This document shows, piece by piece, positions 12,821 to 43,519 of a stretch of DNA of 64,000 nt. Below the pieces are notes generated by a model that searched no databases, had not been told where the DNA came from, and saw nothing but the letters and a program-made list of their open reading frames with translations. The DNA comes from Macrostomum lignano (lineage: Eukaryota): the NCBI GenBank assembly GCA_002269645.1, contig NIVC01001463.1, positions 220,863 through 284,862 on the forward strand, in the 5' to 3' direction. The position numbers and the translations under genes were made by a program. Each line of letters opens with the position of its first letter. Position 1 is the first letter of the stretch.

Positions 12821-13019
12821 TGGCATCCTGAATTTGGATTAAGGATGACTAATGGCACTGCGATTGTGACGCTTTAATAAAAACTATTTAAACAGGGGGA
12901 GAGAAGAAGAGGATAGAATAGATTATTAGAGAGAAGAGAGCTGACAGAAGACAAACCTTGAGCCCTGACTAGCACTAAGTAAGAAGTTAATTCACTGATT
13001 AGGAGCTTCTAAATGAGAA

Positions 13020-14317: not shown

Positions 14318-17300
14318 ATGGCAGGACGTGGAGCTTGGAAATCTGCGAGCCCATCAAGTAGCAACGGGCTAATCCCGTCGCCTCCTGTGCCTCATCACCC
14401 AGCTTCCCAGCCAGTCGCGCTGGGTATAGAGACTAATGCCGCTATTAACACTGGTTTCAATGGCGGCCGTGCTGGCGCCACTGTGTCTAACGGAGCCGTT
14501 GCTAGCCCGCCAACTGGGCTTAATTCTACTACTGGATTTGGCGCTTCTATAGGCTTTGGCGGCAGCGGTGGCGGTGGCGGAGGCGGAGATAGTTCCGGAA
14601 GAAGACAAGGTTGCTTCAGGTGCAATGAAACCGGACACATAGCTAGAGATTGTCCCAACCAGCCTTCAGGAGGTGGCGGCAGAGGTGGAGGCGGAGGTGA
14701 CGGCGCCTGCTACAGGTGCAATGAAACCGGACACATAGCTAGAGATTGTCCCAACCAGCCTTCAGGAGGTGGCGGCAGAGGTGGAGGCGGAGGTGACGGC
14801 GCCTGCTATAGGTGCAATGAAACCGGACACATAGCTAGAGATTGTCCCAACCAGCCTTCAGGAGGTGGCGGCAGAGGTGGAGGCGGAGGTGACGGCGCCT
14901 GCTACAGGTGCAAAGAAACCGGACACATAGCTAGAGATTGTCCGAATGCATCAGCCGAAGTTTGCTACAAGTGCAACCAGCCCGGTCACATCGCGCGCGA
15001 CTGTCCGACTCGCGTTGGTGCCGATGACGCTGCTGCCGGCGATCCCATAGTGCGGGAGACCTATATACCTACCGAACTCACAGTGGAAGCCATCGCTCGG
15101 ATGTCGGTTAAGACTGGCGTTAATGCGCTTATCTTTGACCAGATTGAGGTTCGTAAATCAGCTTGGCTGGGGGGGGGGGGTTGTAAGCGGCATGAACAAT
15201 ATGCAAGGCGGTTTGATTGCTACTAGGAGCGGAACCTAGGTAGAATTACCCATCTCCTTGTCAAAAGACCAGATGTGCAACCGACAGCTCAGCCGCAGCT
15301 ATTGCGCGGCGCATCTGAAGGTACGGCTGTTCAGTCCAATGACTGGGGGTCGCCACACACCATCAATTACCCCAGCTAATGCTGGCACCCATTTTACAGT
15401 TGGGTGAACTGAAGAAATGCAGAGTTAATGTCTTGCTCAAGGACACAAATTGTTCCAGTGGGATCGGGAATCGAACCCCCGACATTCAAGTTGTGAGTCC
15501 GACGCTCTAACCATTACGTTACAATCCCCTACCATAAATTTAAAGGTTAAACATACCTGTAAAAGGTCATTCTTAGTTTTTACTTGGCTACTTAATAAAA
15601 AGTAGTATTAATTGTATTTAATATTCAATCTGCTGTCCGCATTTTACAGGTAGAACTGACCGGTAGCAATAAGCCGCCTCCAATTAAAACGCTGCAAGAG
15701 ATTGGCGTGCCTGACTCCGTGCTGAAGGTGGTCACCGATTCGTTTAAAATCAATAGGCTATTCCCTGTGCAGGCCTATGCTATACCCATTGTAGCGTCTG
15801 GCCGCGATCTGCTGGCCTGCGCTCAGACTGGCTCTGGCAAGACTCTGGCCTATCTACTGCCTATTATTAAAATGCTATTGGATACGCTCAGTACTGATAA
15901 TACTGTCTTTAATGGAGTCTGCTATCCAACTTCGCTGATTGTTGTGCCTACAAGGGAGCTGGCTACTCAGGTAAGAATTGTTGTTGTTGTCTTAGAAAGA
16001 TTTGGAGGCTCAAAATAATTGATACTGACTCTCTTAGCTACTGTTAAGTGTAAAGTTAGCTAGGCTTCTGATATAGACCACAGACCAAACCTGTCCTGAA
16101 ACTGTGTTTCATGTTGACAAAACAAGTTGCAACCTTTAGAAGGCGAAAACACGATTTGAAATTTTGCCAAAGAGACAGATATGAGGGTTGGCATCTATTC
16201 TAACTCATTTCATCATGGCATGCCAACGGCATAGTAAAACAGCGACCGCAGACCTTTGATGCATTTGGTGTCCACTCTCTTGGTCGCACGCCAATGTTCG
16301 AGCATCACCGTGCGAACTGGGTGCCGCGTGAGCGGACGGTGGAGCCAATATCTGGAACGCTGACTTAGACAAACTGATTGAGCGCTATCAGAAATGCATC
16401 TCGTTAAATGGTGAATTTGTGAAGCAACATAAGCGACAGTAACAACGATTTGGGTAGCTGTGACTCGAAAATCGTGTTTTGTAACCGACATCAAGTGGTT
16501 TAAGATTGATCATAACTTTTGACGCATGTATGCATAGTGGCGATCTAGAGTTTCATTTTGGGGGGGGGGGCGGTCCAAGTTTGGGGCGCCAGCACGAGTA
16601 TAAGGGCGCCAGCCAAACCAAAGCTAGGGGGCTCAAAAAATGCGTGTAGGGAAGCGAAAAATCAAGCTTAGGGCCGCAAAAAATGCGTGTAGGGGAGCGA
16701 AAAATCAAGCTAAGGGGCGCAAACTTAGTTTTTTTTGGGGGGGGGGCGCAATATGTTCTGTCAAGCTATTTTGGCCTTCCGCCCCTAAATCCGCCCCTGC
16801 AGAAGAAGACAAAGCCTGACAAGACGAAGGAAAAGAGAAGCCTGGAAACTTATTAAGTTGGTATTTGAAATATTGTGCTCTTGAAAACGGATGACTTGAT
16901 ACCAGGATTAGCTAATGCTGCAGATAATAAGTACAGCAATTTTCTGTATAAAATTTGTGCTCTTATAATCTGACAAATACTGTATATACCCATCTTGCCA
17001 ATCGCCAATTCTCAGGTGTACGACCAGTGCACCGTCTATTTCAAGCCGGTCGGCCTAAAAGTACAGCGCATTCACGGCAGCATCCAGCACGCCCACCTAG
17101 TGAAATGCCTGCAGTCCGGCGCACACACCCTGGTTGCTACAGTTGGCCGACTGAAAGATTTCATTAATCGCAATTTAGTTAGCCTAGCTAGAACTAAGCT
17201 TATTGTACTGGATGAAGCCGACCGGATGCTGGAACAGGGATTCCAAGAGGACGTTGTGGCCTTTATGCAATCGGCCGACCAGCGGCGCCAGGTGATCATG

Positions 17301-19960
17301 TTCTCCGCTACTTACCCGCACTCTGTGCAGACTCTAGCCGGCAGCTACCTGGCCCAGGACTACTTGTTTTTAAGCATCGGCCGGGTTGGCAAGCCCAGTC
17401 CCGACGTGACCCAGGAGGTGCGCGAAGTGTCTCAGGGCGACAAGGTCGCCACTTTGTTAGCTTTGCTAGCAGAATTTCGCGACCTAGAGCCTAACGGATT
17501 TGGCGAGCGAAAAGTTTTGGTGTTTGTCGAACGAAAGGAGACGGCCAACCTGATTGGCATGCTGCTGTGCGACAAGGGCTTTGAGGTGAGCCATTGAGCG
17601 GAGGGACACCTGTCACTCGCATGTCTGCTGTGTCTCTGCTTGTCTGTCACTCGCATGTCTGCTGTGTCTCTGCTTGTCTGTCACTCGCGTATCTACTGCG
17701 TCACTGCTTGTCTGTCACTCGCGTATCTACTGCGTCACTGCTTGTCTGTCACTCGCGTATCTACTGTGTGTCTGCTTGTCTGTCACTCACATGTCCGCTG
17801 TGTCACTGCTTGTCTGTCACTCGCATGTCTACTGTGTCATTGCTTGTCTGTCACTCGCGTATCTACTGCGTCACTGCTTGTCTGTCACTCGCGTATCTAC
17901 TGTGTCTCTGCTTGTCTGTCACTCGCATGTCTACTGTGTCATTGCTTGTCTGTCACTCGCGTATCTACTGCGTCACTGCTTGTCTGTCACTCGCGTATCT
18001 ACTGCGTCACTGCTTGTCTGTCACTCGCGTATCTACTGCGTCACTGCTTGTCTGTCACTCGCGTATCTACTGCGTCACTGCTTGTCTGTCACTCGCGTAT
18101 CTACTGCGTCACTTCTTGTCTGTCACTCGCGTATCTACTGTGTCTCTGCTTGTCTGTCACTCGCGTATCTACTGTGTGTCTGCTTGTCTGTCACTCACAT
18201 GTCCGCTGTGTCACTGCTTGTCTGTCACTCGAATGTCTACTGTGTGTCTGCTTGTTTACTGTAGTCTCAGATATACTAGAATAAGTTATTCTAGTATCTG
18301 TGGTTGTAGGTAAGGAAAGGGCCTGAGTCACAGCTTCAAATCATGACGAAAATTGATCCGCAGCCAGTGAAGAAGGCAAATCAGTCATATTTTTATGCCT
18401 ATTTTTCTGACCATTGAGCACGCCATCAAGTCAGGGCTGCTGTGCACCCTGAGTCAGCGCGCGCGTGCTCAGGGGTCATCAGAATGGGTAATGACTGCTT
18501 GCGGCTGCAGTTTTCGACCAATTGTGAAGCTTCGATCCAGTATTGGAATTTAGGCGTTTATTAATATGATGATATCAGCCTCTATTTGGTTAATCTATGA
18601 GTGCACCTGTACTGATCGATTGCTTCGTATTCAACTAGGCCACCAATAATCACGGCGACCGGCCGCCAGCCGAGCGTCAGCGGGCCTTCTCCGAGTTCCG
18701 CAGCGGCACCACACCGGTGATGGTGACTACTAATATGATGTCCCGCGGCATCGACATCTCAGGCATATCGCTGGTGATTAATTACGACTTGCCGCAGGAT
18801 GACTCCAGCTATGTGCACAGGATTGGCCGGACTGGGCGCTGCGGCAATCTGGGCAGGTGAGGCTATCGTGAGCTTTGTTGCGCTAATCCACCAGCATAGC
18901 ATCTGTTGCGCTAATCCACCAGCATAGCATCTGTTGCGCTAATCCACCAGCATCTGCTGTGCTAATCCACCAGCATCTGCTGTGCTAATCCACCAGCATC
19001 TGTTGCGCTAATCCACCAGCATCTGCTGTGCTAATCCACCAGCATCTGTTGCGCTAATCCACCAGCATAGCATCTGTTGCGCTAATCCACCAGCATAGCA
19101 TCTGTTGCGCTAATCCACCAGCATAGCATCTGTTGCGCTAATCCACCAGCATAGCATCTGCTGTGCTAATCCACCAGCATCTGCTGTGCTAATCCACCAG
19201 CATCTGTTGCGCTAATCCACCAGCATCTGCTGTGCTAATCCACCAGCATCTGTTGCGCTAATCCACCAGCATAGCATCTGTTGCGCTAATCCACCAGCAT
19301 AGCATCTGTTGCGCTAATCCACCAGCATAGCATCTGTTGCGCTAATCCACCAGCATAGCATCTGCTGTGCTAATCCACCAGCATCTGCTGTGCTAATCCA
19401 CCAGCATCTGCTGTGCTAATCCACCAGCATCTGCTGTGCTAATCCACCAGCATCTGCTGTGCTAATCCACCAGCATCTGCTGCGCTAATCCACCAGCATA
19501 GCATCTGCTGTGCTAATCCACCAGCATCTGCTGCGCTAATCCACCAGCATTCTTAAGCTCGATCTCACAGCCTTCCTAAGAGTAGTTCCAAGGCATTATT
19601 GAGTCAACTCCGCAACTATGTGTAACAAAATCCTCAACGACACTATGTTAATCTCCATCCCCCAGATCCATCAGCTTCTTCGATCCCAACGCAGACGGGC
19701 CGTTAGCTCACCAGCTGGTCGGCAATCTCCGCAGTGCCCAACAGCCGGTGCCCGAATGGCTTGAGACAATCGCCGAACGCGAAGGCTGCTCGGGCAACGG
19801 CTACGGCGGCCGCGGCCGCGGACGCGGCGAGTATCGCGACATTCGACGCGGCATCGGTCGCACCGTCGAAATCATCGACGACAGTTTCGGCCTGGGCGAC
19901 GGCGGCGGAGCTTTCCAGCCAAGGCCGGCCGATGTGCCGAACGAGGACGACTGGTCGTGA
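14318..19960 (+). CDS. vasa: Vasa/DDX4-like DEAD-box RNA helicase, 5 exons, 744 aa
   Basis: Exons 14318-15148, 15650-15970, 17016-17585, 18639-18856, 19666-19960; all GT-AG, phases compatible, total 2235 nt. Gly/RGG-rich N-terminus with 5 CCHC knuckles; [31 protein letters not shown] motifs; acidic Trp C-terminus EDDWS. Confidence 0.9.
15277..15530 (-). mobile_element. tRNA-derived SINE (family B, CORE-like) in vasa intron 1
   Basis: Minus-strand tRNA head (TGGTTAGAGCG..GGTTCGATTCC) then GTGTCCTTGAGCAAGAC and CAACTGTAAAATGGGTGCCAGC; homologous to 53638-53903 and 62712-62850. Confidence 0.8.
16180..16530 (+). mobile_element. Internally deleted mariner transposon remnant in vasa intron 2
   Basis: Encodes WVPRE (mariner WVPHEL motif) joined closely to [20 protein letters not shown] (mariner C-terminal KL..RW.KC...G.Y motif); ends only approximately defined. 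Confidence 0.6.
16535..16799. mobile_element. Degenerate MITE
   Basis: Left end TAGTGGCGATCTAG vs reverse complement of right end CAGGGGCGGATTTAG; internal short direct repeat. Confidence 0.4.
17608..18258. repeat. 34-bp minisatellite in vasa intron 3
   Basis: Unit CTGCTTGTCTGTCACTCGCGTATCTACTGCGTCA. Confidence 0.95.
18872..19550. repeat. 23/28-bp minisatellite in vasa intron 4
   Basis: Units TGTTGCGCTAATCCACCAGCATC with or without an extra TAGCA. Confidence 0.95.
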
Positions 19961-20379: not shown

Positions 20380-21262
20380 CCGTATAAAAGTGTGACAGTC
20401 ACATTTTGAATTTGTGATCTGTTTTGTGACCATCAAAAAATGGTATCAAATTTGACCCTCCATTGTGACCCTCTGATGTGACCGTCAAATGAACGGTCTC
20501 TCATGTGACCCTCCAATGTGACCGTCAAATAAACGGTCTCTCTTGTGACCCTCCAATGTGACCGTCAAATAAACGGTCTCTCTTGTGACCCTCCAATGTG
20601 ACCGTCCTATAAACGATCTCTCGTGAGACCCTCCAATGTGACCGTCAAATAAACGGTCTCTCATGTGACCCTCCAATGTGACCGTCAAATAAACGGTCTC
20701 TCATGTGACCCTCCAATGTGACCGTCAAATAAACGGTCTCTCATGTGACCCTCCAATGTGACCGTCAAATAAACGGTCTCTCATGTGACCCTCCAATGTG
20801 ACCGTCCTATAAACGATCTCTCGTGAGACCCTCCAATGTGACCGTCAAATAAACGATCTCTCGTGAGACCCTCCAATGTGACCGTCAAATAAACGGTCTC
20901 TCATGTGACCCTCCAATGTGACCGTCAAATAAACGGTCTCTCTTGTGACCCTCCAATGTGACCGTCAAATAAACGGTCTCTCATGTGACCCTCCAATGTG
21001 ACCGTCAAATAAACGGTCTCTCATGTGACCCTCCAATGTGACCGTCAAATAAACGGTCTCTCATGTGACCCTCCAATGTGACCGTCAAATAAACGGTCTC
21101 TCATGTGACCCTCCAATGTGACCGTCAAAGAAACGGCCGCTCATGTGACCGATCAATGTGACCCAAAAATGTGACAAGCAGTGTTACATTTTGATGTGAC
21201 AAGCAGTGACACATTTTTTACTGTCACTAAAAAATTGTGACCGTCCCACTTTTATGCGGGCT
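20380..21262. mobile_element. TIR element carrying an internal 40-bp minisatellite
   Basis: CCGTATAAAAGTGTGACAGTCACA at left vs reverse complement CCCGCATAAAAGTGGGACGGTCACA at right; interior is about 17 copies of GTGACCCTCCAATGTGACCGTCAAATAAACGGTCTCTCAT. Confidence 0.6.
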
Positions 21263-22134
21263 TGCCAAGCTTGAGAGCTTTGAAAAATCCAAATTCTGTG
21301 TTGTCAGCTTTTCCAACTTATTCGAATTTTCATCTAATAAACACGATTCTCTGAGTAAAGGTACTATTAGTAGAATATTTAGCCACAAAGACTGGTCTCA
21401 TTTATATCAGTTTTGCACCTCATTGGCTGGCTGGAAGTGCCTATAAAAAGCTAAGATTCCGTACGTAAAACACATTGTGTACCAGACTACTTATGAAAGC
21501 TTAAGCTGAAGTTTGCATTTTCTGTGCAGCATTTTTTCACCCTCGCATGCGCGCTGTTTCTTATCTCAACAATATATATTATATGACATTTTGCTATCCG
21601 GTTCTGCAGATGGCAAAGGCCTGATTGAACATCTCTGAAGTAATACATTTCTTTATTTGGAATTGTTGTCTTAATCCTTTATTACTTTGTATGTACTTTC
21701 ACCACTTGTACTCGTAGTTTATTGATCTATATCCAGTCGTTAGGGCCCACCAAGTCAGGTATATTCAAGCAGTTCCAATCTTTGAGTGTATCGCTATTGA
21801 GTCTAATGTATCACTACTGAATCTAATGTATCAATATTTAGTCTAATGTATCACTACCGAGTCTAATGTATCACTACTGAGCCTAATGTATCAATATTGA
21901 GTCTAATGTATCACTACCGAGACTAATGTATCACTACTGAGTCTTATGTATTGCATCGGTTTGCGCGAGCCCGCGAGGGCTAACCGCTGTTAGTGCAAGG
22001 GGGGCTGTTTGGGTGCTGGCTGTATGGTGGGGTGGTGGGTGCGTTGTGCGTGCGCGTGCCTATTTAGGCCGCCACCTTTGTGGCTGCGCGGGGTTGCTAG
22101 CGGTTGAATTTTTTAATTTTTTTTTTGCTGAATC

Positions 22135-23226
22135 ATGGCAGATAGCCTTGTACTGCCCGCAACTAACAAAGCGCTACGAGAAGCCCTTAGTGAGCGCGGC
22201 CTGCCTACTAATGGCAATAAGCAAGAGCTAACAAGTCGTCTAAAACTCAGCATTGCCAAGGAGCTTGAGCGGCAGGCGTTGGAGCAGGACAGAGGCTCAT
22301 CTCGTCGTGCTCAAGATGACAAGACATCACCGACGAATGCGGGCGCACCCGAGCTAAGTCTGGCTCCACCTGAGGACGAGATGCTACCGGCGGTGGGCGC
22401 CTTGGCCGAGGGTCGGGCGGCGACGGGAGGCGGTCTCGAGGATCAGCTGCGAGAGACTGAACTGCGCATTCGGCTGCTGGACCTGAAAAAAAGAGAGGCT
22501 CAGCTCGAAGCCGAGCTCGCTGAAGCGCGTCACAGTGGCACGGCGGCTGCGAGAGAACGTGATCAGACTCCCGGTGAGTGGCATGATTTGGTTGGCGAGT
22601 GTATACTCGGGCAGGCTGGGGCTGCAATTTCGCATGCTCAGGCGCCGGCGGTGTACAGAGTCGTTGATTTTATCAGTGAGCGTAAGCGGAGACAAGGAAG
22701 CCAGTCTGTTGTGGGAGCGGCAAAGCCAGAGAGGTTGAAACACGTCAGTCCCGAGTCACTGTCGTTTGGCGATTTCATCTCCGGTAGCTGTAACTTACTG
22801 GTGCAAATGCTGCGTGATGGCAAACTGCTGCACATTGTTGATGGCAGAATCGATTCATCCGAGTTGATCGATCATCTCCGACATAACGCTAGAATTGGTG
22901 ACCTGCTAGATTTAGGCTTCGATCGCATTAAAGTCATGAGATATGATGACGAATGTCGGCTTCTCCAGCATGATGGAACGCGGTGGAGCGCTGTTAGCGC
23001 AGACCTGGGTCTGGTGGCAACACACTTGATGGCACCGACAAAAATGATAAATGCAACAGCGCCTAGAAAGCGAACGCAGCCACCTGTCTGTTTCGACTTC
23101 AACAGTCTTAGCGGCTGCAACAGAACTCACTGCCGCTTCGCCCATCAGTGCCGCAGGTGCTCACAGCCGCACTCTGAAGCCCGAGCCCACGCTGATGGGG
23201 ACCCGGGCCAACTTTCAAAAAACTAG
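22135..23226 (+). CDS. Ngaro-1 Gag-like protein (SAP domain, coiled coil, C-terminal CCCH/zinc-finger cluster)
   Basis: NKALREALSERGLPTNGNKQELTSRL is SAP-like; CFDFNSLSGCNRTHCRFAHQCRRCSQPH; colinear with the Gag of element 2. Confidence 0.8.
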   Translation: MADSLVLPATNKALREALSERGLPTNGNKQELTSRLKLSIAKELERQALEQDRGSSRRAQDDKTSPTNAGAPELSLAPPEDEMLPAVGALAEGRAATGGGLEDQLRETELRIRLLDLKKREAQLEAELAEARHSGTAAARERDQTPGEWHDLVGECILGQAGAAISHAQAPAVYRVVDFISERKRRQGSQSVVGAAKPERLKHVSPESLSFGDFISGSCNLLVQMLRDGKLLHIVDGRIDSSELIDHLRHNARIGDLLDLGFDRIKVMRYDDECRLLQHDGTRWSAVSADLGLVATHLMAPTKMINATAPRKRTQPPVCFDFNSLSGCNRTHCRFAHQCRRCSQPHSEARAHADGDPGQLSKN

Positions 23227-23277: not shown

Positions 23278-25109
23278 GTGCCCCCACGGGGGAGCTCTGA
23301 CCCGAGTTCAACTGAGTTGTCGAGCGACCTTGTGTTTGCGGTTTGGCGGGAAGAGCTGGCTGGGACCGAGATGCCGGAGGACCGTGTCAGGTTTGTGCTC
23401 GATGGTGTGAAGAATGGCTTTCGAATTACTAATAAAGTTATGGATTGTAAGAACCACACTGAGATGGCAAATCACAGATCAGCTACCATTCACCAGCAAG
23501 CTGTTGAGGCCCAGGTGCGCCAGGAGCTCAAGCAGGACCGCTACAGGCGCTGCCAGACAGGCAACCGGCCGCTCATCGTTAGTGCACTTGGTGCGATCCC
23601 TAAGGCGGATTCGTCTTCCATCCGCCTTATTCACGACTGCAGCCTGCCAACTGGCGCCTCTGTGAATGATTTCTTTGAGTCGAAACGGAAGTTGCGTTTT
23701 ACTTCGGCCAGCAACTTTGCCTCGAAGCTGTACAGCGGCGCGTACATGTGCAAAGTGGATCTGTCGCAAGCATATCGTTCATGTGGTGTGCACCCTGATG
23801 ACCACCGGGTCACAGGCATGAAGATTCAGCTCCAAGGCGAGGGCCAGCCAGTGTACCTGTACGACACGTTTGGTGCTTCGGCTTCCGTATTCTGCTTTTA
23901 CGAGCTGAGCCAAGCTGTGCGTTTTATGATGTTGAAGCATGGTTTCTACGCTATGGAGGCCTACATGGATGACTTCGCCTTTTGTGGAGATCTGGAGTCC
24001 TGCTGGAAGTTCTACAACCTTCTCATCGATCTGCTCGAGCGGCTAGGCTTCACCGTAGCAAGTGTGTTCCGCCGACAACGCGGATGACCTTTCTGGGCAT
24101 TTTATTTGATAGCGTGGCAGGCCAGATGTCTCTTCCTGCCGAAAAAGTCCAAGACTTGTTGCATGTTTTATCCCTCTGCTCTTCGAAGAAAAGGCTGTCA
24201 AAGTCGTGTTTGCAGAAGTTGATCGGCAAGTTAAACTGGGCGTCGCAAGTTGTTCGGCACGGGAGAGTTTTCCTCCGACCTCTTATCGACATTGTTAACA
24301 AGCTGCATCGGCCTCATGACAGGGTTCTTGTTAGTCCCTCCGTGGTGCACCAACTCTCCTGGTGGCGGTTGGCTTTGCAACATCGCATCGGTGTTGACCT
24401 GTGGACTTCGCCGAGGGCTTGTGTTGCCATAGAGACTGACTCGTCGTCTTCAGGCGCCGCGGCGGTGCTCCGTGATGGTGATGGGATTCGTGATTGGTGC
24501 TTTATTGACTGGCAGATCGACGCAAATGGTGTTTTTCAGAATTACTGCATCAATTACAAGGAGGCTGTGGTTATATTGCTGGCTGTTTTGAGATGGGGCC
24601 AATCCTTGGCTGGTTGTCGGCTTGCTGTGTACTGCGACAATGAGACGGCGTGTTGGATTCTAAGGCGAGGTGTCTCCAAGGACTCGCGTCTGATGTGGTT
24701 GCTGCAGTCTGTGGCGTTGCTCTGTCTGCGTTTTGACGTTGAATTTGAGGTCTTTCACGTTCCTGGTGCCTATCAGCTGTTTGCTGATGCAGGGTCCCGC
24801 CTGCACTCGCGTCATGAGTTGCTTAACTTTATTTTCCGTGTTTACGGGTCTGTGCCAGTTTGTCCTGTGGAGTTTTCGAATCACGCGTTTTCTGTTTTTG
24901 CCTCCCGTTTTTTATTTTCACAGGCCGCCTCCCTGCAACGCCGACCCTCGGCGCCGCCGCCTCCAGCCTCCTCGCCGCAGCATACGCACCGCAGTCACGC
25001 AGGGCGATCTCATCGGCCGTCCGGTCCTGGCACAGCTTCTGCAACGAGAACGGGACCAACCCGGCTCGATCCGACCGGTCGGTGCTACTCAACTACCTGG
25101 CTCACCTAG
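23278..25109 (+). pseudogene. Ngaro-1 RT-RNase H, frameshifted
   Basis: KVDLSQAYR, FGAS, YMDDF, then a frame switch near 24057 (GFTV / SKCVPPTTRMTFLG); RNase H IETDSS, INYKEA, YCDNET, HVPG; RLP missing before FG relative to element 2. Confidence 0.85.
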
Positions 25110-26211
25110 TCGAATGCCGCCTGAGATCGTTCAACAGTCTGCGTGTCCATGTCAGTGCACTGTCCAGCTGGTTCAAAGCCTGTGGTGCTGAGGACCTAAC
25201 AAAACACCACCTGGTCTCACTGCTCGTTCGCGGCGCTAAACGGAGGATGGGCCAGCGACCAAGACGGAAGCTGCCGATTTCGCCTGCGATGCTGCTGTCT
25301 GTGAAAAACCGGCCTAACTCGAGCAGTTCGCTTGACAGAGTCTGCTGGCTTGTGACGCTTATTGCTTGGTGGGGGATGTTTCGGCGCTCCAGTCTCCTGC
25401 CCAGTCAGCAGTCCGCTTCACCGATCTCCGTCTCAGCCTTTCAACGCCACCCGAAGGGGGTTGTGCTCTCTGTCAGTTATGGCAAGACGAATCAGTTCGG
25501 CGCGAAGCTGCACCGGGTGTTGCTTCCAAGGCTAAAAGATGGACATCCGCTTTGCCCAGTGGCTGCGCTAGAGGGTCACCTCCGTGTCAGCAAGCTTGGC
25601 TGCAGGCAGCCTGTGTTCTCCTACCAGTTGGCGAGCGGATCCTCTGTTGTCCTGTCTGCCTCAAGATTCGACAAGTACCTCAAGCGCTGCCTAGCAACTG
25701 CTGAGCAGGACGCTCGTTCTTTCTCAGCGCACAGCCTGCGCAGAGGTGGTGCCACCTGGGCCTACCGTCTCGGACTATCTGTTTGTGATAAATAGGCAAT
25801 TAGATAATAGCATGCACGGTAAGCAATTATTTAGGCCCTAGACAAACCTACTTGGAGCGTTCGGAGATTTTAAAGCTATTAATCCTAATCGCCTATCGCC
25901 GGTCGGCGAGTTCTACCAGTCTTCTCCAATAGCCGCAGGTACAGTACAAGAAAATAAAGAACACGAGGGAACACAACCGAAAGATTTAGAGAGTGATAAT
26001 GCCTCCATTTCTCTTAGGCTCTTTTGTGAGCCTGGAGTGAAATGGGTGTTAGCCATCCACCCCTCGCGCTGTACTTTGTGCCGCCTTTGTGCTCCGTCCT
26101 CTCTACCCCCCGTGGGGTGGGGGGGGGGTTTGCTCACCCGCTTATTTATTTGCACGCCGCCCTCTGTGCCCCGTCGCTCGCTTTGGCTTTGCAGCTCAAA
26201 ATTTTACCATT

Positions 26212-27276
26212 ATGGAAAGTGCACGCAATTTTACAACTAAACAGCTCAAACAAGAGCTAGCTCAGCGAGGCCTCTCACAAGCTGGTCGTAAACAACAACT
26301 CTATGAGCGTCTACACAGACACCTGCGTGCTATGTCTGAGTATCCAGCTGCAGCAAAAAGTGACGACGCAAGCCTCAACTCAGACACCATCGACGGTGGA
26401 CATTCGACGGGTGGACACGGAGCTTCAGGGAGCGCGGCGAGCGACCTGGCGGCTCTGAGGAAGGAGGTCGAGCAGCTGGAGATTGAAGCCCTGACTCGGC
26501 GCCGCGCACAACTGCAAAGCGAGCTCAATCAGTCGCAGAACCACCGGTCTCAGGAACCCCCACAACAAGGTGAGCGGAGAGAAAATGCTGGCTTGCATGA
26601 GGCGTTTTTGTTAGGCGGCGCTCTTACAGATCCCGGCAGAAGCCAGTGTGACAAAAAGACTAGCAGGGCTTATCTGATTCGCGATTTTGTCAAGCCCAGT
26701 TCAAATCAACCTAATGAGAGCCTCACAGCCTGCATGGAGAACGGGAACCTGGTCTTTAAGAAGCAGCCACCCAGCTTGGGGAAAATCTCTGTCGGCCAGT
26801 GGATTGCAGGGAACTCTAAGATTTTGCTTCGACTAGTTGATGATGGGTCGCTGATTCACATTAATGAGGATGGATCTGTCAATGTTGACGAACTAAAAGG
26901 CTATCTGGAGTACTCACAGAAGATCGGCGAGCTCTTAGACGCTAACTACAGCCCAAGTGTCGTGTGGGAATTCGATGAGGATTACAGAAAGTTGATCGCC
27001 GACTCGGATTCGCATCGATGGGGCTGCGAGCCTCCACAGCTGTACCACCGACACCTTAACGCACCAAGAAGCTTAAAAGTCACCCTAAGCAGACCAGCAT
27101 CCAACCAGTCGCAAGCTCCCATCTGCCTAAGCTACAACTCCCCTGCCGGCTGCCAGCGGTCCTCCTGTAGGTACCGTCACGTCTGCAAGCTGCGCGACTG
27201 CGGCCGGCCGCACCCCGCACACCAGCACCGTCCGGCCAGCGTCGGCGGCGACGCTGTGGAGGGAGCAAAAAACTAG
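26212..27276 (+). CDS. Ngaro-2 Gag-like protein (SAP, coiled coil, CCCH cluster)
   Basis: ATG directly after A1; TKQLKQELAQRGLSQAGRKQQLYERL is SAP-like; CLSYNSPAGCQRSSCRYRHVCKLRDCGRPH. Confidence 0.85.
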   Translation: MESARNFTTKQLKQELAQRGLSQAGRKQQLYERLHRHLRAMSEYPAAAKSDDASLNSDTIDGGHSTGGHGASGSAASDLAALRKEVEQLEIEALTRRRAQLQSELNQSQNHRSQEPPQQGERRENAGLHEAFLLGGALTDPGRSQCDKKTSRAYLIRDFVKPSSNQPNESLTACMENGNLVFKKQPPSLGKISVGQWIAGNSKILLRLVDDGSLIHINEDGSVNVDELKGYLEYSQKIGELLDANYSPSVVWEFDEDYRKLIADSDSHRWGCEPPQLYHRHLNAPRSLKVTLSRPASNQSQAPICLSYNSPAGCQRSSCRYRHVCKLRDCGRPHPAHQHRPASVGGDAVEGAKN

Positions 27277-29033
27277 ATCTTTTTTATAGCCGCCCTGCTT
27301 TTAACCCCCGTTCGCCTTTACCTTTTATCTTGCCTCCATCTGCTCATTGCCCTGCTCGCACCCTGCTCTCTCCACCGCGCCGCGCTCTGTCGTCCGACAT
27401 GAACCTTGCCGCCTGGGAGCCGCTGCTTCTGGGTGACCAAGACGAAGATTTTCTTCGCAGCGGCCTTAGCTACGGCTTTCGGCTCATCAATAGATCGCCG
27501 CCTTTTCTTGCCCGCTCCGCCAACTACCGATCGGCCTTGGACCAAGCCAAGCAGGTTGGTGAACAGCTCGCCAAGGAGCTCCGTCTCGGCCGCTTGCAGC
27601 TCGCCAATGGCCCTGTCATGGTGAACGCCATCGGGGCGATTCCAAAATCTGACGGCAGTGTCCGGGTCATTCATGACCTTTCTAGACCTTCGGGGTCCTC
27701 CGTCAACGACAGCTATGAGCAGGAAAAGGGGCTGCGCTTCGCCTCTGTCCAAGACCTGACCCGCTATCTTCGCCCAAACTCGTTTATCGGCAAAATCGAC
27801 CTCAAGCAGGCCTATCGTTCCGTCGGTATTCACCCTGACGACCAGGTGCTCACGGGCCTCAGCTGGCGGTTCTCTGCCGACAGCGATGACTCGGTGCTCG
27901 TTGACACTCGGTTGCCCTTTGGTGCTCGAGCGTCATGTGAGATTTTCCATCGCTTATCGGCCTGCATCAAGCGCCACATGTTCAGCATTGGCTTCACAGC
28001 TACCGTCAACTACTTGGACGACTGGGCAGTCGCCGGTGATACTGAAGAAGCGGCTCAGGAGGCCTTCAATTATCTGGTTGATCTGCTGCAGAACTTAGGC
28101 TTCGACATCAACTGGCAGAAGACCGTGGCTCCAGCTCAACACGTTGTGTTTCTCGGCGTGCTGGTTGACACTGTGAACGGCACCCTGTCACTTCCAAGCA
28201 ACAAGAAAGACGACATTCGGAAACTGCTGAACGATTGCCTGTCATGTGACGTTGTTAAACTGAAGCAGCTCGAAAAACTGGCCGGTAAGTTGTGCTGGCT
28301 CAGCCAGATCAACAGGCTGTTGCGTCCTTTCCTGCGCCCGCTCTTCGACATCCTCAGCTGCAGAATGGACACCCGGCTGCCATCTGAGCTTCGCAACCTC
28401 TTCCTCTGGTGGCTGCGCGTCGTGAGTTCTCTGCCGCCGACGGTCATTCGCCCCCGTTTTCGTCAACTTGTGGCCATCGAATCTGATAGCAGTTGCGAGG
28501 GTGCTGCTGGCATCGTCTTTGGCAGCGAATTCAGTGACTGGACGTACTTCAGCTGGGAGAAGGACTTTGAGAGCAAGTTCCGCGACCTTCACATCAACCA
28601 CAAGGAGGCGCTGGCTCCGCTGCTTACCATCCTGCGCTTCCGCGAGCAGCTTAGGAACAGCCGCGTGGTGATTTACTCGGACAGCACTGCTGCCGTCGGC
28701 ATGGTCAATAAGCTTTCCTGTCGGCATCCTCTGCTCATTCGCATCTATCAGACCGTTGCTCTCGTGTGCCTCACGTCGGGAATTCAGCTCCAGGCGTTCC
28801 ACCTTCCTGGCCAGATGCAGCTGCTGAGCGACTCCGCTTCTAGAATGGGGGGCTCGAGCAGAGAGCTCATTAATTTTTGCTGCCGTCTTTACGGCTCTTT
28901 ATGCATTTGTCCTTTCGAATTTGCTTCCCACACCATTTCTGCCGTGTCTCGCACCGCTCTTCATTCGCAGGTCGCAGCCGCGCTCCGCTCCGCTCCACCG
29001 TGTCTGTGTCCGCTCTGTGCCGCCTGTCACTAG
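27273..29033 (+). CDS. Ngaro-2 reverse transcriptase-RNase H (in -1 frame to gag)
   Basis: KIDLKQAYR, RLPFGARAS, YLDDW, VFLG; RNase H IESDSS, HINHKEA, IYSDST, HLPG..LSDSASR; open frame with no stops from the gag end. Confidence 0.92.
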   Translation, partial: LDLFYSRPAFNPRSPLPFILPPSAHCPARTLLSPPRRALSSDMNLAAWEPLLLGDQDEDFLRSGLSYGFRLINRSPPFLARSANYRSALDQAKQVGEQLAKELRLGRLQLANGPVMVNAIGAIPKSDGSVRVIHDLSRPSGSSVNDSYEQEKGLRFASVQDLTRYLRPNSFIGKIDLKQAYRSVGIHPDDQVLTGLSWRFSADSDDSVLVDTRLPFGARASCEIFHRLSACIKRHMFSIGFTATVNYLDDWAVAGDTEEAAQEAFNYLVDLLQNLGFDINWQKTVAPAQHVVFLGVLVDTVNGTLSLPSNKKDDIRKLLNDCLSCDVVKLKQLEKLAGKLCWLSQINRLLRPFLRPLFDILSCRMDTRLPSELRNLFLWWLRVVSSLPPTVIRPRFRQLVAIESDSSCEGAAGIVFGSEFSDWTYFSWEKDFESKFRDLHINHKEALAPLLTILRFREQLRNSRVVIYSDSTAAVGMVNKLSCRHPLLIRIYQTVALVCLTSGIQLQAFHLPGQMQLLSDSASRMGGSSRELINFCCRLYGSLCICPFEFASHTISAVSRTALHSQVAAALRSAPPCLCPLCAACH

Positions 29034-29965
29034 CGCCTAGTTCCAGGAAGTCCTATGCGAGCCGCTTACAAGTCTGGAACGAATTCTGCCGGCAGCGTCG
29101 AGTTCCCGCGACCGCCGCCTCCGAGTCTGATGTCTGCCAATTTGTCTCGTTCCTGTTACAACGTGGACCGGCGTCCTACTCCAGTGTGCAGTCAAGCCTC
29201 AGCGCGGTGTCTTACCTACATAGGGCTTCCGCGTCACCAGACCCGACCAAGGGCAGCGCTCGCCTGGCTCTCGTGTGTCGCGGGGCTCGGCGTCTTCTGA
29301 GCCGGCAGCCTCGGCGTGCGACGCCGCTGAAGCCCAGCCACCTCCGCCTGCTTTGCAGCTCCACCGAGCTACGTCATTCGCTGCCGCCCCGTCTGCTGGC
29401 CGCCTTCAAGGCAGCATTGCTGGTGGCCTGGTGGGGAGTCCTTAGGCTCGGCGAGCTCTTACCATCCACCGCTGCGGACGCTCTTCCCCGGAGCTGCCTA
29501 TCAGCGTGCCCCGGTGGTCTGCGGCTGGTGCTCAACAGGTCAAAGACAAACCAATTCAAGGAGCGGCAACTGGAATTATTTCTGCCGCAGGCCTCTGAAT
29601 GCCTGCTTATCTGTCCCGCTTCCGCACTAGCAACTCATCTGCGCGAGAATCAAATCTACGGACCGCAGCAGCCCCTGTTTTCTGTCCTAGGCAGCCGCGG
29701 CCGGACTTTCTTGTCTGCCGCTATGTTCATCCGGCTCCTAAAGCGGGGCATGTCTATGTGCGGCTTTGGCGAGTGCGGCTTCTCGGGTCACAGTCTGCGT
29801 AGAGGCGGGGCCAGCGCTGCCTTTCAGTCAGGCCTCTCAATCGCCGACATCCGTTGCATGGGCGACTGGCGTTCAGACTGCGTCTTTCGGTATTTCTCTG
29901 ATGAGGCGTCGTTTGCCCGCCGTCGGGCAGCAGCTCGGCAGGTCGCTGCCGGCCTGGCCTCTTGA
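28971..29965 (+). CDS. Ngaro-2 tyrosine recombinase (predicted second exon)
   Basis: Catalytic set present: R (GVLRLGEL), K (RSKTNQ), HxxR (GHSLRRGG), W and Y (GDWRSDCVFRY). Confidence 0.92.
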
Positions 29966-31953
29966 CTGCTTACTCGCTCGTTTTATTGACCCTTTGGCGT
30001 TTTACCTTGGCGTTCGTGGCCTGGCTTCGCTTACTTTTGCTGCCTCCTTGTTTTTATCTTCCTGTTCTCTCCTTTTCTCCTCCTTTTTTTCGGGGTTGGG
30101 GTCGCTTTCCCCACCTCTCGCGCTGCTTCGGGCCATAAGCCTTTGCCTGCCTGCTGTTCGTCTCTTTCGCTGTTGGGGTGTGATTGGTTAATGCCTCCAT
30201 TTCTCTTAGGCTCTTTTGTGAGCCTGGAGTGAAATGGGTGTTAGCCATCCACCCCTCGCGCTGTACTTTGTGCCGCCTTTGTGCTCCGTCCTCTCTACCC
30301 CCCGTGGGGTGGGGGGGGGTTTGCTCACCCGCTTATTTATTTGCACGCCGCCCTCTGTGCCCCGTCGCTCGCTTTGGCTTTGCAGCTCAAAATTATTTTT
30401 AAGCACATTCTTTTTCTTTTAATCTCGTTTGCTTGCAAAATAAACTTATCGTTACTACGGGGTCGCTTTCCCCACCTCTCGCGCTGCTTCGGGCCATAAG
30501 CCTTTGCCTGCCTGCTGTTCGTCTCTTTCGCTGTTGGGGTGTGATTGGTTAATCCTATTTCAAGAATAGCTAACTTGATTGACGGTTTAATTTGATTAGC
30601 TGAGTTACAAGATTTAGACAAACGGCGCAGATAACTAGAGTTGACAAAACGACAATAACGGTTAATAAATAATGATTATATACGCACTGACAAGCGGATC
30701 TCAGCTGAAGAAGAAGGAGGCACCGAACACAGGACCACGGAGAAGACTCCTAACCCCTGGCCTAAACCAGAACCTACTCTCAAACGAGAGCCCTGCCGAA
30801 CCGACCGTTCAACGGAGTACCGACTAAGTTCTATCGGCACTGCCCTTCAGTGTAACACTGGGGACCTCGGGGTCGAGGCCGCGTACTTGATCAGATCCGA
30901 CAGTCTCTATCTAACCGCGCTTGATAGCGACGACTTCAGACAGGAATTTGCCGTAGACGTTACGCCACAAGACTACTGCGGTTGGGCGGGAACAAAGATA
31001 TGGACCGGGGGTGATGAAATCAAACGCCTCAAAGCGCGAACCAACAAGAGGAGGAAAATCGGGCCACCGGCCGGGAACTGGACAAGACAAACCGGGGAAA
31101 AGGAGCAAGCGAGATCCGATTGCCAAAACACACTTTCATATATAGTCAGAGTCACAACCCCTCAAAACTCCCCTCAAGCCGGGTGGTGGTCGTCTGGCCG
31201 GCCGCACGATAAGCCGAATTGAACTGTGCCCGCGGCGCCGGGTAGAACTGAAACTTGCCGCGTGCCAGGGTCCAGGCCGGTTCTGATTGGCTGACCGCGC
31301 AAAGCTGGGGTTCGCAGACAAACTCAACCCTCCGCTGAGTCACAAATTTGGCGTCTAACTCTAACCTGTTTACAATTTTAGATTTCAACCAACTAGAAAA
31401 AGTACACAAAAAACGCATGACTAAACAAGCAAAATAACAATTCAATAACAATATAGAAACTAATGCAGTCAATTTACAACAAAATACACGCAAAGATGCT
31501 CACACTACATGTTCAAGAGGTGAAGTGCATCGGTGACTGGCGAAGTGATGCTGTTACTGCCTACCTTCCATCTGCTGATTCTGTGCGGGCTGGTTCGCGT
31601 TTTGCTGGTGCTTTTAGCGAGAGCTGCCTTTGAATAACTTTTGCTTGTGTTCAAAGTTTTATTTCCGTTCTTATCCCCAGCCTTATTTCCGCCGTTTCGT
31701 AAATTCTCTCCTTCGTTCAGTCATTTGTTTGTTTGGCCTTGGGGTTGCATCCTCTGGCTTTTCGCTGCCTCGCCATCGCCACACTCGGTTTGTCTTTGTC
31801 TTTGTCTTTGCCTCCCCTTCACTAACACTGCCGAGACTAATGTATCACTACTGAGTCTTATGTTTCACTACCGAGTCTAATGTATCACTACTGAGTCTAA
31901 TGTATCAATATTGAGTCTAATTTATCACCACCGAGACTAATGTATCACTACTG

Positions 31954-33872: not shown

Positions 33873-34713
33873 TGAGTCTTATGTTTCACTACCGAGTCTA
33901 ATGTATCACTACTGAGTCTAATGTATCACTACTGAGTCTTATGTATTAATATTGATTATAATGTATCACTACTGAGTCTTATGTATTAATATTGAGTCTA
34001 ATGTATCACTACTGAGTCTTATGTATCAATATTGAGTCTAATGTATCACTACTGAGTCTAATGTATCAATATTGAGTCTAATGTATCAATATTGAGTCTA
34101 ATGTATCACTACTGAGTCTTATGTATTAATATTGAGTCTGGTGCATCAAAATACGAGGTATAATTTCAACGATCCTATGGAATTCAGCAGACCCTCGCCA
34201 TCTCTCATCGCTTGCCAACAGCGGTTGTCATCGGGATTAATTATCGATGCTGGGTTTCATTTTTTTGAAAAAGAAAAACGCCGCTGTGTTTTGAGTCTGA
34301 GTCTATTGCTTCGCCAAGAAAAAATGCACGAGCCTTCTGCCTTCCACGTTGACCGGCAATTAACGTAATGGCATGTATTGGTGTACAGGGTAGATTAAGT
34401 GAGCTGGTCATTAGGAGCCCAAGTGGCGAAAAAAAATCGGCCACTCTCTTGACTTGGAGACCGACTGACTCCCGCACTTGATCGCTCTGGCCGCATGCCA
34501 ACGGAGGCTGAGGTTTCACCATCCACTTGAGCTGGCCGGACCGGCTTAACTAAATGAAGTAGGAAGAGCCAGCATCAATTGAGAAATATTTAGCGGATGC
34601 GTGATTCACCTCTTAGGCCGCCCAGTCCCATCTCCGGATTCGTGTATATAAATCTACATTGCACTGAGCTAGTCCAGCCTCTGAACTGCATCAAAGTGAA
34701 AAAACCCATCGCT

Positions 34714-39583
<4,870 letters not shown>

Positions 39584-41115: not shown

Positions 41116-42009
41116 AACGAGTCTCCTATGATTTCCTTCAGAAGTTCATGTTTTGCCTTCCCTGTCTCCGATATCTCTTTGGCTCCCGACCAGCTGAGGC
41201 TTGACAAATACGAAGTACCGAGAGTGACTGCAGGAATCTCAGAGCCCCAGCCAACATTCGAAGATGAGGCGCGCTGACCTGTGTGTAACCAATTTCGGTT
41301 GCGAGTACCTGTTCAATCGGGCGGAAAAACGCTATTGGAGAAGAGTTCAGAAACAAAAAAGACAGGAAAGAAATTAATTCCAGCCTTGTGGATAATTTGA
41401 TTGGCAACTAGTGCAGGTCTGTGACTATATTACAGCTATTATTATACTAAATATGAAAGCATTTCGCAGGTTTAAATTTGAACTTATCTTCTGCTGGTTG
41501 GTTTTTTTCAGAAATTCAATAAACACTTCATTTTCTCCTGGCCAATGCGTGATAAAAAATAATCCAGTAAAAACTGCAAAAAAAGTCTGCGTTTAAAAAT
41601 ACGTCAATTCTGCCAAGGTCAGAGAGAACGGTGTGATCCTGTTCTGTGTACACATCTCACTCAATCAGCTGACTAATTAAAGATTAAGATTAGCTGAGTA
41701 ATCGCACGAGTAATTGGGTCTGCAATCCAAGAGTATGAAAGGGCACGCACAGAAATAAATTCAATTAGTTCAAGTTCATCCAATATATCAATCTCGTGTT
41801 GAAATAGCTGCATTTGCATAACATGCATGTTCAGTTCAAATTTTTACATGCAATATTGTGGGACTAGAGCGATGCACAATCTTTGTCTGTAGTCAATGCA
41901 TTATACTATTTATATATAGAAAATGACAGTTGGATTGTGATTAATTGATGTTTGTACATCCGTGATTTATGATATAGCAATGCCTTCATCGCATAATATC
42001 CGAGGACAC

Positions 42010-42985: not shown

Positions 42986-43519
42986 GAGGACCCTGTGTCT
43001 GAGAACCTAAAAACATAGTGTACTACAGCCTTTGGGCGGACATACAATAGTTAAGGGAAAGATAATCGACACTAAGAGCATAAAGAACTTTTTGTGGCAA
43101 ATCAAGTGAAGTCGAAAAAAGCAAAACAATGGCTTAAATCAAAATAGATGCTGGCAATATTTTATCTACAGCTTTTGAGAAGTTCAATAGAATTGCAGTA
43201 AAAGTTCATTGTCAAAGGGCTCTGACTGAACTGGCTGCAGCGGCGCATGGTTGCAATGGGACGTGAGCATGGACATCTAGAGAGTGAAGACTGGGCTGGT
43301 CTCCTGTGTTCAAGTGACAGCTGAACAGCGAACAGTTTAATGATCTAATTGCTTAGACGATGGCAGAAAGGTGAGCTTCAATGGAAAGACGCAGACAGGG
43401 GAATAAAACTTGAAGCAGATTTAGCTCGTACGAGCGTAGTAAGCAAAAAGCGGCAAGCGAAAGTAACAAGCAAGACTTTCAAAATACGCAAGAAAAAGAG
43501 ACACGGACAGTAAGAAGAC

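Follow-up and report, generated by a model that had tools for sequence, protein, structure and literature searches.

A predicted cis-splice that attaches the Gag N-terminal module to the tyrosine recombinase (YR), with the full-length transcript being used in three ways, is the probable mode of YR expression in two retrotransposons of Macrostomum lignano. The elements, termed E1 and E2, lie in a window of 64,000 nt (the whole stretch of DNA analysed; assembly GCA_002269645.1, contig NIVC01001463.1, positions 220,863-284,862 of the forward strand), and their genes, repeats and sites are all given below in window coordinates on the plus strand. The conserved intron is a concrete, testable answer to how an overlapping and mostly start-less YR frame is translated, and the same layout in amphioxus, molluscs and a tardigrade would explain how the recombinase is made without a start codon of its own.

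Arrangement of E1 and E2

E2 carries split direct repeats in the order A1...B1-A2-B2, as in Ngaro, with A1 at 25997-26203 and the 3' repeats at 30098-30553 (B1 30098-30192, A2 30189-30394, B2 30459-30553); A1 and A2 are 95-99% identical and B1 and B2 are 100% identical. The gag ORF (26212-27276, 354 amino acids) has a CCCH-type zinc finger at the C terminus and is homologous to the gag ORFs of E1 and of a third flatworm-type element on Logan contig L001 (E3). An exact-match look-up of the E2 gag protein returned no record. The RT/RNase H frame (27201-29033) is placed at -1 relative to gag and is open across the gag end, with its first ATG at 27399, and the region 27399-29033 matches Pfam RVT_1 (E = 1e-11) and RVT_thumb. 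A Pfam search of this ORF gave no match to a methyltransferase (Dam/MT), and a Dam match is present in the DIRS-like metagenome relative L004. Ngaro, a member of the DIRS order, is described in PMC9210276, PMC13465315 and PMC2632668 (citing Goodwin & Poulter 2004) as having gag-like, RT/RNase H and overlapping YR ORFs, split direct repeats arranged A1...B1-A2-B2 and, unlike DIRS1-like elements, no methyltransferase domain. E1 and E2 are assigned to the Ngaro-type YR retrotransposons by their RT/RH and YR sequences, the split direct repeats of E2 and the lack of a methyltransferase match.

The two elements are nested and not simply adjacent. E1 is interrupted at approximately 25784 by a 5.7-kb insert (25784-31513) in which an unknown sequence X (25784-25996 and 30554-31513) carries E2. 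The first part of the E1 YR, corresponding to its proposed exon 2 (24924-25783), is truncated by the nested insertion and is 98.6% identical to residues 433-719 of the M. lignano model A0A1I8G0Z6. The YR C terminus (QEVKCIGDWRSDAVTAYL...SESCL*), which holds the catalytic Trp and Tyr, resumes after the insert at 31514-31633, and tblastn with the C terminus of the M. lignano model P0024 gives 89% identity in this region. The E1 RT is also frameshifted near 24060, and at the termini of E1 only a shared 20-mer array is seen. E1 is a disrupted copy. The RT sequences of E1 and E2 are 37-40% identical.

E1, E2 and L001 each have an in-phase A_AAA_AAC heptamer immediately 5' of the gag stop, at 27267-27273 directly before the TAG in E2 and at 23217-23223 in E1, and no run of identical nucleotides in the three-way gag codon alignment is longer than CAAAAAAC. 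The RT frame is at -1 relative to gag in E2 and L001 and in the same frame as gag in the degraded E1. A strong stem follows the heptamer after 11 nt in E1 (a perfect 14-bp hairpin) and after 7 nt in L001, compared with a reference spacing of 5-9 nt, and no strong stem follows it in E2.

Splice sites and the predicted fusion protein

The proposed exon 1 of E2 (26212-26569) consists of gag codons 1-119 plus 1 nt, encoding a SAP domain, a disordered spacer and a long helix, and its length of 358 nt places the donor GTGAGC (26570-26575; CAACAAG|GTGAGC, boundary 26569/26570) in phase 1. The acceptor, CTCTTCATTCGCAG|G at 28970/28971, is also in phase 1 and ends a pyrimidine-rich tract (28950-28970, ...TTCATTCGCAG|) that is only moderate in strength (13/18 pyrimidines). 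Most of the RT/RNase H frame lies within the proposed intron, with 63 nt extending into exon 2 (28971-29965). The join has 1353 nt with 450 open codons plus a stop and the junction peptide PPQQGRSRAPLR. The proposed exon 1 of E1 (22135-22573) consists of gag codons 1-146 plus 1 nt, encoding SAP and a coiled coil, and its 439 nt again place the donor GTGAGT (22574-22579; CCCG|GTGAGT, boundary 22573/22574) in phase 1. Here the acceptor is TTTTTTATTTTCACAG|G at 24923/24924, in phase 1 at the end of the pyrimidine tract at 24903-24923 (CGTTTTTTATTTTCACAG|), and the join is open over 1311 nt, giving a 436-amino acid protein. The open YR frame of E1 begins at 24827 and contains no ATG ahead of the conserved domain, and the E2 YR has an in-frame ATG at 28901, 23 codons upstream of the acceptor. 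The coordinates, phases and open joins that the preliminary description gave for both elements, and the missing ATG that it reported for E1, all hold.

With a generic donor matrix, the proposed donor ranks first among all GT dinucleotides of the respective 3.7-kb element, with scores of 10.8 and 10.4 bits, and only 4-5 GT[AG]AG motifs occur per element. Among pyrimidine-rich YAG|G sites, the proposed acceptor ranks first in E1 and near the top in E3. Both sites match the motifs of M. lignano cis-splicing, GT[G/A]AG for the donor and CAG for the acceptor (PMC8629364). The three flatworm gag genes have an overall nucleotide identity of 24% in a three-way alignment, and a GTRAG common to all three occurs at one place only, in this linker (columns 451-460, same codon position). 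Similarity in the YR frame begins directly after the acceptor, with the YR-frame peptides upstream of it being unrelated between elements. An alternative acceptor for this donor, the T-rich TAG at 27289/27290 that precedes RT, was considered and rejected as the frame closes after approximately 38 codons.

The Pfam SAP match in E2 gag covers residues 6-39 (E = 5e-10) and that in E1 has E = 4e-7; the PF02037 bit scores are 39.1 for E2, 30.1 for E1 and 35.1 for L001 (cut-off 23.9). The N-terminal exons of the amphioxus, limpet, tardigrade and oyster elements described below fall under the PF02037 threshold. SAP is a feature of the flatworm lineage, with other lineages carrying different N-terminal modules, and the shared N-terminal exon is general. 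In the AlphaFold model of the E2 fusion (overall pLDDT 83.9) SAP occupies residues 1-42 with helices at 9-18 and 27-42 (pLDDT >90), a long helix spans 73-112, the junction residues 119-127 have pLDDT <50, and the recombinase fold starts at 132. The model puts the junction in a linker predicted to be disordered, with the SAP/helix module on one side and a complete Cre-like fold on the other. Foldseek with this model finds Cre (3crx_A, E = 9e-9, target TM 0.68, 311 columns), and against full-length Cre structures 311-325 columns are aligned with target TM values of 0.65-0.70. The N-terminal domain of the YR matches Pfam Phage_int_SAM_1. Exon 2 of E2 has the two-domain fold of Cre and the R-K-H-R-W-Y set of the tyrosine recombinases (R278, K311, H393, R396, W419, and Y427, fusion numbering). 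The predicted fusion differs from Cre in being encoded by a retrotransposon and in adding an N-terminal SAP and coiled-coil module of approximately 120-146 residues.

Conservation of the intron and alternative explanations

The layout was compared in seven elements, the flatworm-type E1, E2 and L001 and those of Branchiostoma belcheri (L010), Patella vulgata (L011), Paramacrobiotus metropolitanus (L012) and Saccostrea (L013), which span 4-5 phyla, the flatworm-type elements belonging to Platyhelminthes, and diverge to 22-51% protein identity. In every one, a GT-AG intron of 2.17-2.83 kb runs from gag codon 113-146 to the first YR residues, donor and acceptor are in phase 1, and the fusion frame is open; the conservation of donor and acceptor position and phase that the preliminary description proposed to check across Ngaro families is thus seen in 7/7. 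In L001, whose YR is 51% identical to that of E1, the sites are CCCT|GTGAGT and CCTTTCTCCATTTTCAG|GT, both phase 1, with a 2362-nt intron. The intron runs from AAG|GTAAGG to TTTTACAG|GT in amphioxus, CAA|GTATGT to CTAAACAG|AT in the limpet, CAG|GTAATG to GTTTTCAG|AT in the tardigrade, and GAG|GTGAGT to AATTTCAG|GA in the oyster (2168-2833 nt in these four, phase 1, fusions open). The amphioxus, limpet and tardigrade elements have split direct repeats that are 99-100% identical; none were detected in the oyster element. In all elements but that of amphioxus, the acceptor CAG also encodes Gln in the RT frame, so that part of its conservation could reflect dual coding.

Existing gene models use the same junction. 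The GT-AG joins of L010-L013 reproduce their four RefSeq proteins exactly, with XP_019639177.1, XP_050388701.2, XP_055356622.1, and XP_062617009.1 each using exactly this intron. The sequence ...NGNQTAVSSQ|GRSRAPHRHTVSV... in the M. lignano UniProt model A0A1I8J2F9 (69% identity with the E2 fusion) shows the SAP-coil|GRSRAP junction as predicted, and the acceptor of E1 is likewise used by A0A1I8G0Z6 (G|RLPATPTL). The M. lignano annotation is unreliable when taken alone because other models of these elements (P0020, P0021, and P0024) are chimeric, with P0020 joining RH to YR through a tiny intron and P0021 fusing YR to methionine synthase. Word-indexed protein searches matched M. lignano UniProt models and, beyond these, nothing closer than distant YRs. 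P0004-P0008 were rejected as comparable elements, being DIRS-like or other protist elements or phage integrase with start codons of their own. No relatives were found in the metagenome scan with the fusion alignment, and the homology-search matches contained no spliced-fusion contig, the two Logan contigs of the third element, L001 and L002, both being unspliced and coming from runs that may be of DNA or RNA.

A second ribosomal frameshift, from RT/RNase H into YR within their short overlap, would yield a Gag-Pol-YR polyprotein and make the GT and AG incidental. The position of YR at -1 relative to RT/RH in 6/7 elements suits this reading, as do the putative -1 site at the gag end of the same elements and an in-phase T_TTT_TTA in E1 (24908-24914), just upstream of the YR homology. 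However, inspection of the E2 and L001 overlaps by eye reveals no canonical X_XXY_YYZ heptamer, the amphioxus YR is in the +1 frame with an acceptor that lies downstream of the RT stop, and the limpet YR frame opens just one codon ahead of the acceptor. A second frameshift also leaves unexplained the conserved phase-1 GTRAG/GTAWG donor in gag and the models that use it, and we regard it as improbable.

Slightly more improbable is the translation of YR alone from an unspliced or internally initiated RNA, by means of an internal promoter, an IRES, a non-AUG start, or flatworm spliced-leader (SL) trans-splicing onto the acceptor. The in-frame ATG of E2 at 28901 would suit such independent translation, but E2 is the exception, and in 6/7 elements the stretch from the upstream stop to the conserved YR domain contains no ATG. 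The YR frame begins just 1-32 codons upstream of the acceptor in the seven elements. In the three flatworm elements that were checked, 82-250 residues of the protein precede the next Met. For the SL version, approximately 30% of M. lignano genes receive the SL by trans-splicing at acceptors of the form [T/C]TNCAG, which L001 fits, but the M. lignano SL ends in ATG (PMC8629364) and joined at the acceptor it would read phase 0, the tail of the RT frame and not YR, so this version is rejected. The presence of the same layout in the amphioxus and tardigrade elements also argues against it. To our knowledge, SL trans-splicing is not known in either of these groups.

The least probable explanation is an artefact of annotation or chance, in which consensus-like GT and AG happen to keep the frame open and no such mRNA exists, as some in-frame GT...AG pair is available in any 3.7-kb sequence and several M. 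lignano models (P0020 and P0021) are obviously wrong, but this is countered by the canonical phase-1 GT-AG at the same position in seven such divergent elements, by the donor being the sole GTRAG common to the three flatworm gag genes, by the coincidence of the junction with the start of YR homology and the predicted disordered linker, and by the fact that an ab initio gene finder is not expected to skip a 2.2-2.8 kb stretch of long ORFs in four genomes that were annotated separately.

Proposed expression mechanism and relation to known systems

In the favoured cis-splicing mechanism, unspliced RNA would serve as mRNA for Gag and as the template for reverse transcription, and a -1 ribosomal frameshift at A_AAA_AAC near the gag stop would produce Gag-RT/RNase H from the same RNA. 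A fraction of the RNA would be cis-spliced from the GTGAG donor that follows gag codon 119 in E2 and codon 146 in E1 to the CAG|G acceptor in the 3' end of RT/RH, removing approximately 2.4 kb comprising the remainder of Gag and nearly all of the Pol coding sequence. Splicing would be partial, given the weak acceptor of E2. The spliced RNA, translated from the gag AUG, would encode SAP, a flexible spacer, a coiled-coil helix, the disordered linker containing the junction, and the Cre-like recombinase; by splicing to the gag exon the otherwise ATG-less YR frame would gain a start codon. That this splice occurs in vivo we infer from the sites, their phases, the open frames, the conservation, the gene models and the domain architecture. 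The YR would thereby share the putative DNA-binding and oligomerisation head of Gag.

One transcript giving Gag, Gag-Pol and a spliced SAP-YR was the scheme of the preliminary description. Its Gag-Pol product is consistent with the conserved A_AAA_AAC before the gag stop and RT at -1 in E2 and L001 (gag frame in E1), and its splice is supported by the deep conservation and the independent gene models; its SAP head applies to the flatworm lineage only. The broader proposition, that the phase-1 intron is ancient, at least Bilateria-wide, and the general means of Ngaro YR expression, with YR always fused to a Gag N-terminal module (a DNA-binding or basic head plus coiled coil), stands at about even chances.

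In that case, Gag and recombinase would share an address and an oligomerisation handle, and the common module could couple Gag particles and recombinase such that the latter is recruited to the Gag-RNA/cDNA particle. Intron-less "processed" Ngaro copies would be expected, and splicing efficiency would set the transposition rate. The "three ORFs" view would miss the real recombinase protein, and several RefSeq entries named "uncharacterized protein" would be Ngaro Gag-N::YR. No published description of a spliced Gag-YR fusion was found, and the intron, the fusion and SAP are unmentioned in the papers on Ngaro that were covered, PMC9210276, PMC13465315 and PMC2632668 among them, which give three (or four) overlapping ORFs and no mechanism for YR expression. 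E2 and its amphioxus, limpet and tardigrade relatives share the split direct repeats of Ngaro as described.

With such a mechanism a YR retrotransposon would be added to the retroelements, retroviruses among them, in which spliced and unspliced RNA are kept in balance. The env mRNA of avian leukosis/sarcoma virus has its donor within gag, so that translation of the downstream protein begins at the gag AUG and adds Gag residues to it, and the unspliced RNA is both the Gag/Pol mRNA and the genome. Approximately six Gag codons are passed to the envelope protein in this virus, whereas in the Ngaro elements 113-146 codons of folded domains (SAP and coiled coil) would be passed to the integration enzyme and the intron would hold nearly all of pol. 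Foamy virus makes Pol from its own spliced subgenomic mRNA with no Gag part, and the likeness is that a retroelement enzyme comes from a spliced mRNA of its own and not only via a Gag-Pol polyprotein. The difference is that in Ngaro RT/RH is apparently still a Gag-Pol frameshift product, and the recombinase alone would be split off.

Reading frames and proposed splice sites of the two window elements

The two Ngaro retrotransposons of the window, element 1 (E1) and element 2 (E2), are both read on the plus strand. In E2 (sequence read over 26100-30200) the gag ORF occupies 26212-27276, the RT/RNase H frame stays open over 27201-29033 and has its earliest ATG at 27399, and the tyrosine recombinase (YR) frame spans 28877-29965. 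The donor CAACAAG/GTGAGC at 26569/26570 ends a 358-nt exon 1 in phase 1, and the acceptor CTCTTCATTCGCAG/G is placed at 28970/28971. The joined exons (1353 nt) translate into an open 450-amino acid protein reading ...PPQQ-G-RSRAPLR... across the junction (junction peptide PPQQGRSRAPLR), and reading and translation confirm every figure of the preliminary description for these sites, their phases and the join. The split direct repeats A1 (25997-26203), B1 (30098-30192), A2 (30189-30394) and B2 (30459-30553) are 95-100% identical with a layout that is textbook Ngaro. The YR retains Arg-278, Lys-311, His-393, Arg-396, Trp-419 and Tyr-427, and no methyltransferase match occurs in E2.

E1 has the same layout, as had been proposed, despite amino acid identities to E2 of 26% in gag, 37-40% in RT and 33% in YR. 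Its gag ORF lies at 22135-23226, the donor CCCG/GTGAGT at 22573/22574 ends a 439-nt exon 1 in phase 1, and the join to the acceptor TTTTTTATTTTCACAG/G at 24923/24924 is open. E1 is a damaged copy with a frameshift in RT near 24060 and a YR interrupted after 25783 by a 5.7-kb insert (25784-31513) within which E2 is located; the YR C terminus (QEVKCIGDWRSDAVTAYL... to the stop codon) resumes past the insert at 31514-31633. E1, insert and E2 form a three-level nest and not two tandem elements. Apart from E2, the insert consists of 25784-25996 and 30554-31513, and GTT flanks it on either side.

A 20-nt minisatellite (TGTATCACTACTGAGTCTAA) at 21787-21951, upstream of E1 gag, recurs downstream of the E1 YR end at 31823-31953 and 33873-34139 and may be part of the E1 terminal repeats. 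The window is minisatellite-rich, as reported for the M. lignano genome (PMC5730564), with arrays of 20-51-nt units exceptionally dense across 1-64000 (for example 12110-12823, 17610-18255, 20464-21163, 36747-37582, 42003-43002, 43501-44559 and 60052-60994), a density that fits the reported 15% tandem-repeat content. A tandem repeat at 14612-14943 comprises 3.5 copies, 98% identical, of a 96-nt unit; the unit translates to a CCHC zinc knuckle of 14 residues followed by a Gly/Arg-rich stretch, and the repeat may belong to a CNBP-like gene or to another retroelement gag.

Conservation of the predicted gag-to-YR junction

A search with the E2 fusion finds the M. lignano UniProt entry A0A1I8J2F9 (a 344-amino acid fragment with a Pfam SAP match, 69% identity), which belongs to another family and reads ...LEIKALTRRRAQLQRELNGNQTAVSSQ/GRSRAPHRHTVSVPILCRLSLAPS..., precisely the junction that was predicted. 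This entry represents either an intron-containing gene or an intron-less genomic copy, and splicing is favored either way. A second model, A0A1I8G0Z6, is 88-99% identical to E1 over the aligned segments and reuses the E1 acceptor (...G/RLPATPTL...) with a different donor. This identity and the abundance of minisatellites in the window point to M. lignano or a very close relative as the source of the DNA. The M. lignano models are supportive and not decisive because others are plainly chimeric, with P0020, P0021 and P0024 consisting of Ngaro parts joined to each other or to host genes. A0A1I8JHY2, named "methionine synthase," carries a full Ngaro YR at its N terminus, and names in the public M. 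lignano proteome are to be used with care. A third flatworm-type element (L001, a Logan contig from SRR31628425) has a SAP gag, an RT and a YR 51% identical to E1, with the predicted phase-1 splice sites CCCT/GTGAGTAC and CCTCCTTTCTCCATTTTCAG/GTCGCC, an intron of 2362 nt and an open fusion.

An exhaustive HMMER search with A0A1I8J2F9 returned several YR proteins that are extended at the N terminus by about 110-170 residues, four of them RefSeq models whose loci were examined. Removing a single GT-AG intron from each locus yields exactly the RefSeq protein: the initial 113-144 codons of a gag-like ORF, plus 1 nt, become joined to the beginning of the YR ORF, and the remaining gag and an RT/RNase H ORF of 560-752 amino acids are skipped. 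The last exon 1 and first exon 2 bases are 8433/11267 in the amphioxus Branchiostoma belcheri (XP_019639177.1, locus L010; AAG/GTAAGG to TTTTACAG/GT, intron 2833 nt), 7373/9622 in the limpet Patella vulgata (XP_050388701.2, L011; CAA/GTATGT to CTAAACAG/AT, 2248 nt), 7340/9693 in the tardigrade Paramacrobiotus metropolitanus (XP_055356622.1, L012; CAG/GTAATG to GTTTTCAG/AT, 2352 nt) and 7424/9593 in the oyster Saccostrea (XP_062617009.1, L013; GAG/GTGAGT to AATTTCAG/GA, 2168 nt). The A1/B1/A2/B2 repeats at the amphioxus, limpet and tardigrade loci are 99-100% identical, and these elements are young, bona fide Ngaro. Donor and acceptor are GT-AG and in phase 1 in all seven elements, so that the conservation of position and phase, proposed earlier as a check, is found in these seven, and the YR frame starts only 1-32 codons upstream of the acceptor. 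The amphioxus acceptor lies beyond the RT stop, and its conservation there therefore does not come from RT coding.

Domain architecture of the predicted fusion

Pfam SAP matches the gag N termini of E2 (E = 5e-10) and E1 (E = 4e-7), bearing out the assignment made from the sequence, whereas the N-terminal exons of the amphioxus, limpet, tardigrade and oyster elements have no SAP match and are instead basic or rich in Cys, with a coiled-coil-like stretch in some of them; SAP is confined to the flatworm elements among the seven. The Pfam matches of RT and of the YR N-terminal domain are RVT_1 and Phage_int_SAM_1, respectively. The AlphaFold2 model of the E2 fusion (mean pLDDT 83.9) places a SAP helix-loop-helix in residues 1-42, at pLDDT above 90; residues 47-71 are disordered and 73-112 form a single long helix, with the predicted splice junction in a disordered linker (pLDDT below 50 at residues 119-127) and a well predicted fold from residue 132. 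Foldseek aligns this recombinase fold with full-length Cre over 311-325 columns (E = 9e-9, target TM 0.65-0.70), and exon 2 is on these two grounds a complete two-domain recombinase. Exon 1 is modeled as a separable DNA-binding and oligomerization module.

The gag ends carry a CCCH-type zinc-finger-like motif (C-x8-C-x4/5-C-x3-H) at 27120-27230 in E2 and 23090-23190 in E1, which is also present in the limpet gag, whereas a CCHC knuckle matching Pfam zf-CCHC occurs in that of the tardigrade. A related M. lignano UniProt model is named "C3H1-type domain-containing protein."

Possible routes to YR expression and relation to known systems

In E1, E2 and L001 gag ends in A_AAA_AAC, a candidate Gag-Pol frameshift heptamer, in the correct phase directly before the stop (23217-23223, 27267-27273 and about 1257-1263, respectively). 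The RT frame of E2 and L001 is -1 relative to gag, and the longest identical-nucleotide block of the gag alignment is CAAAAAAC. Strong hairpins follow the heptamer at 11 nt in E1, where the stem is perfect over 14 bp, and at 7 nt in L001, with no strong hairpin downstream of the E2 heptamer. In amphioxus gag and RT/RNase H share one frame with a single TGA CTA between them (L010 8994-9005), suggesting stop codon readthrough rather than frameshifting.

The frame geometry would allow YR to be reached from RT by another -1 frameshift in six of the seven elements, and an in-phase T_TTT_TTA occurs in E1; however, the overlap of E2 or L001 contains no canonical slippery heptamer, amphioxus would need a +1 shift, and the conserved gag donor would be left unexplained. 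That one site and one phase, with canonical GT-AG, recur in five phyla is difficult to explain as nothing but an artefact of annotation or chance. Scored with a generic donor matrix, the top GT of each 3.7-kb window element is the claimed donor (10.8 and 10.4 bits), the best pyrimidine tract of E1 belongs to the claimed acceptor, and each element contains only 4-5 GT[AG]AG motifs. A codon alignment of the three flatworm gag genes (24% three-way nucleotide identity) places GTRAG in all three only in the donor linker (columns 451-460, same codon position). The predicted splice-site pattern exceeds chance, with a coincidence probability roughly estimated at about 1e-3 to 1e-4. Independent initiation of YR fails, the absence of an ATG before the conserved domain noted for E1 extending to six of the seven elements, with an in-frame ATG (28901) in E2 as the exception. 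Trans-splicing of the M. lignano spliced leader (SL), which ends in ATG (PMC8629364), onto the YR acceptor was also considered and rejected; the SL ATG would fall in phase 0 and therefore read the RT-frame tail, not YR.

The interpretation that YR would be made as a spliced Gag-YR fusion has strong comparative support at the sequence level, as well as the support of existing gene models. The Ngaro/DIRS papers examined, on elements of fungi, Xenopus, kinetoplastids, nematodes, amphioxus and Dictyostelium, give overlapping ORFs only, with no spliced YR mRNA, Gag-YR fusion or SAP domain; the founding Ngaro paper may mention them. Retroviruses use subgenomic splicing in a comparable way: ALV/RSV env is translated from the gag AUG, and a spliced mRNA encodes foamy virus Pol. 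The proposed Ngaro mechanism resembles these, is best seen as a variation on a retroelement strategy already known, and is probably general for metazoan Ngaro elements, with the difference from retroviral splicing that whole folded Gag domains would pass to the integration enzyme.
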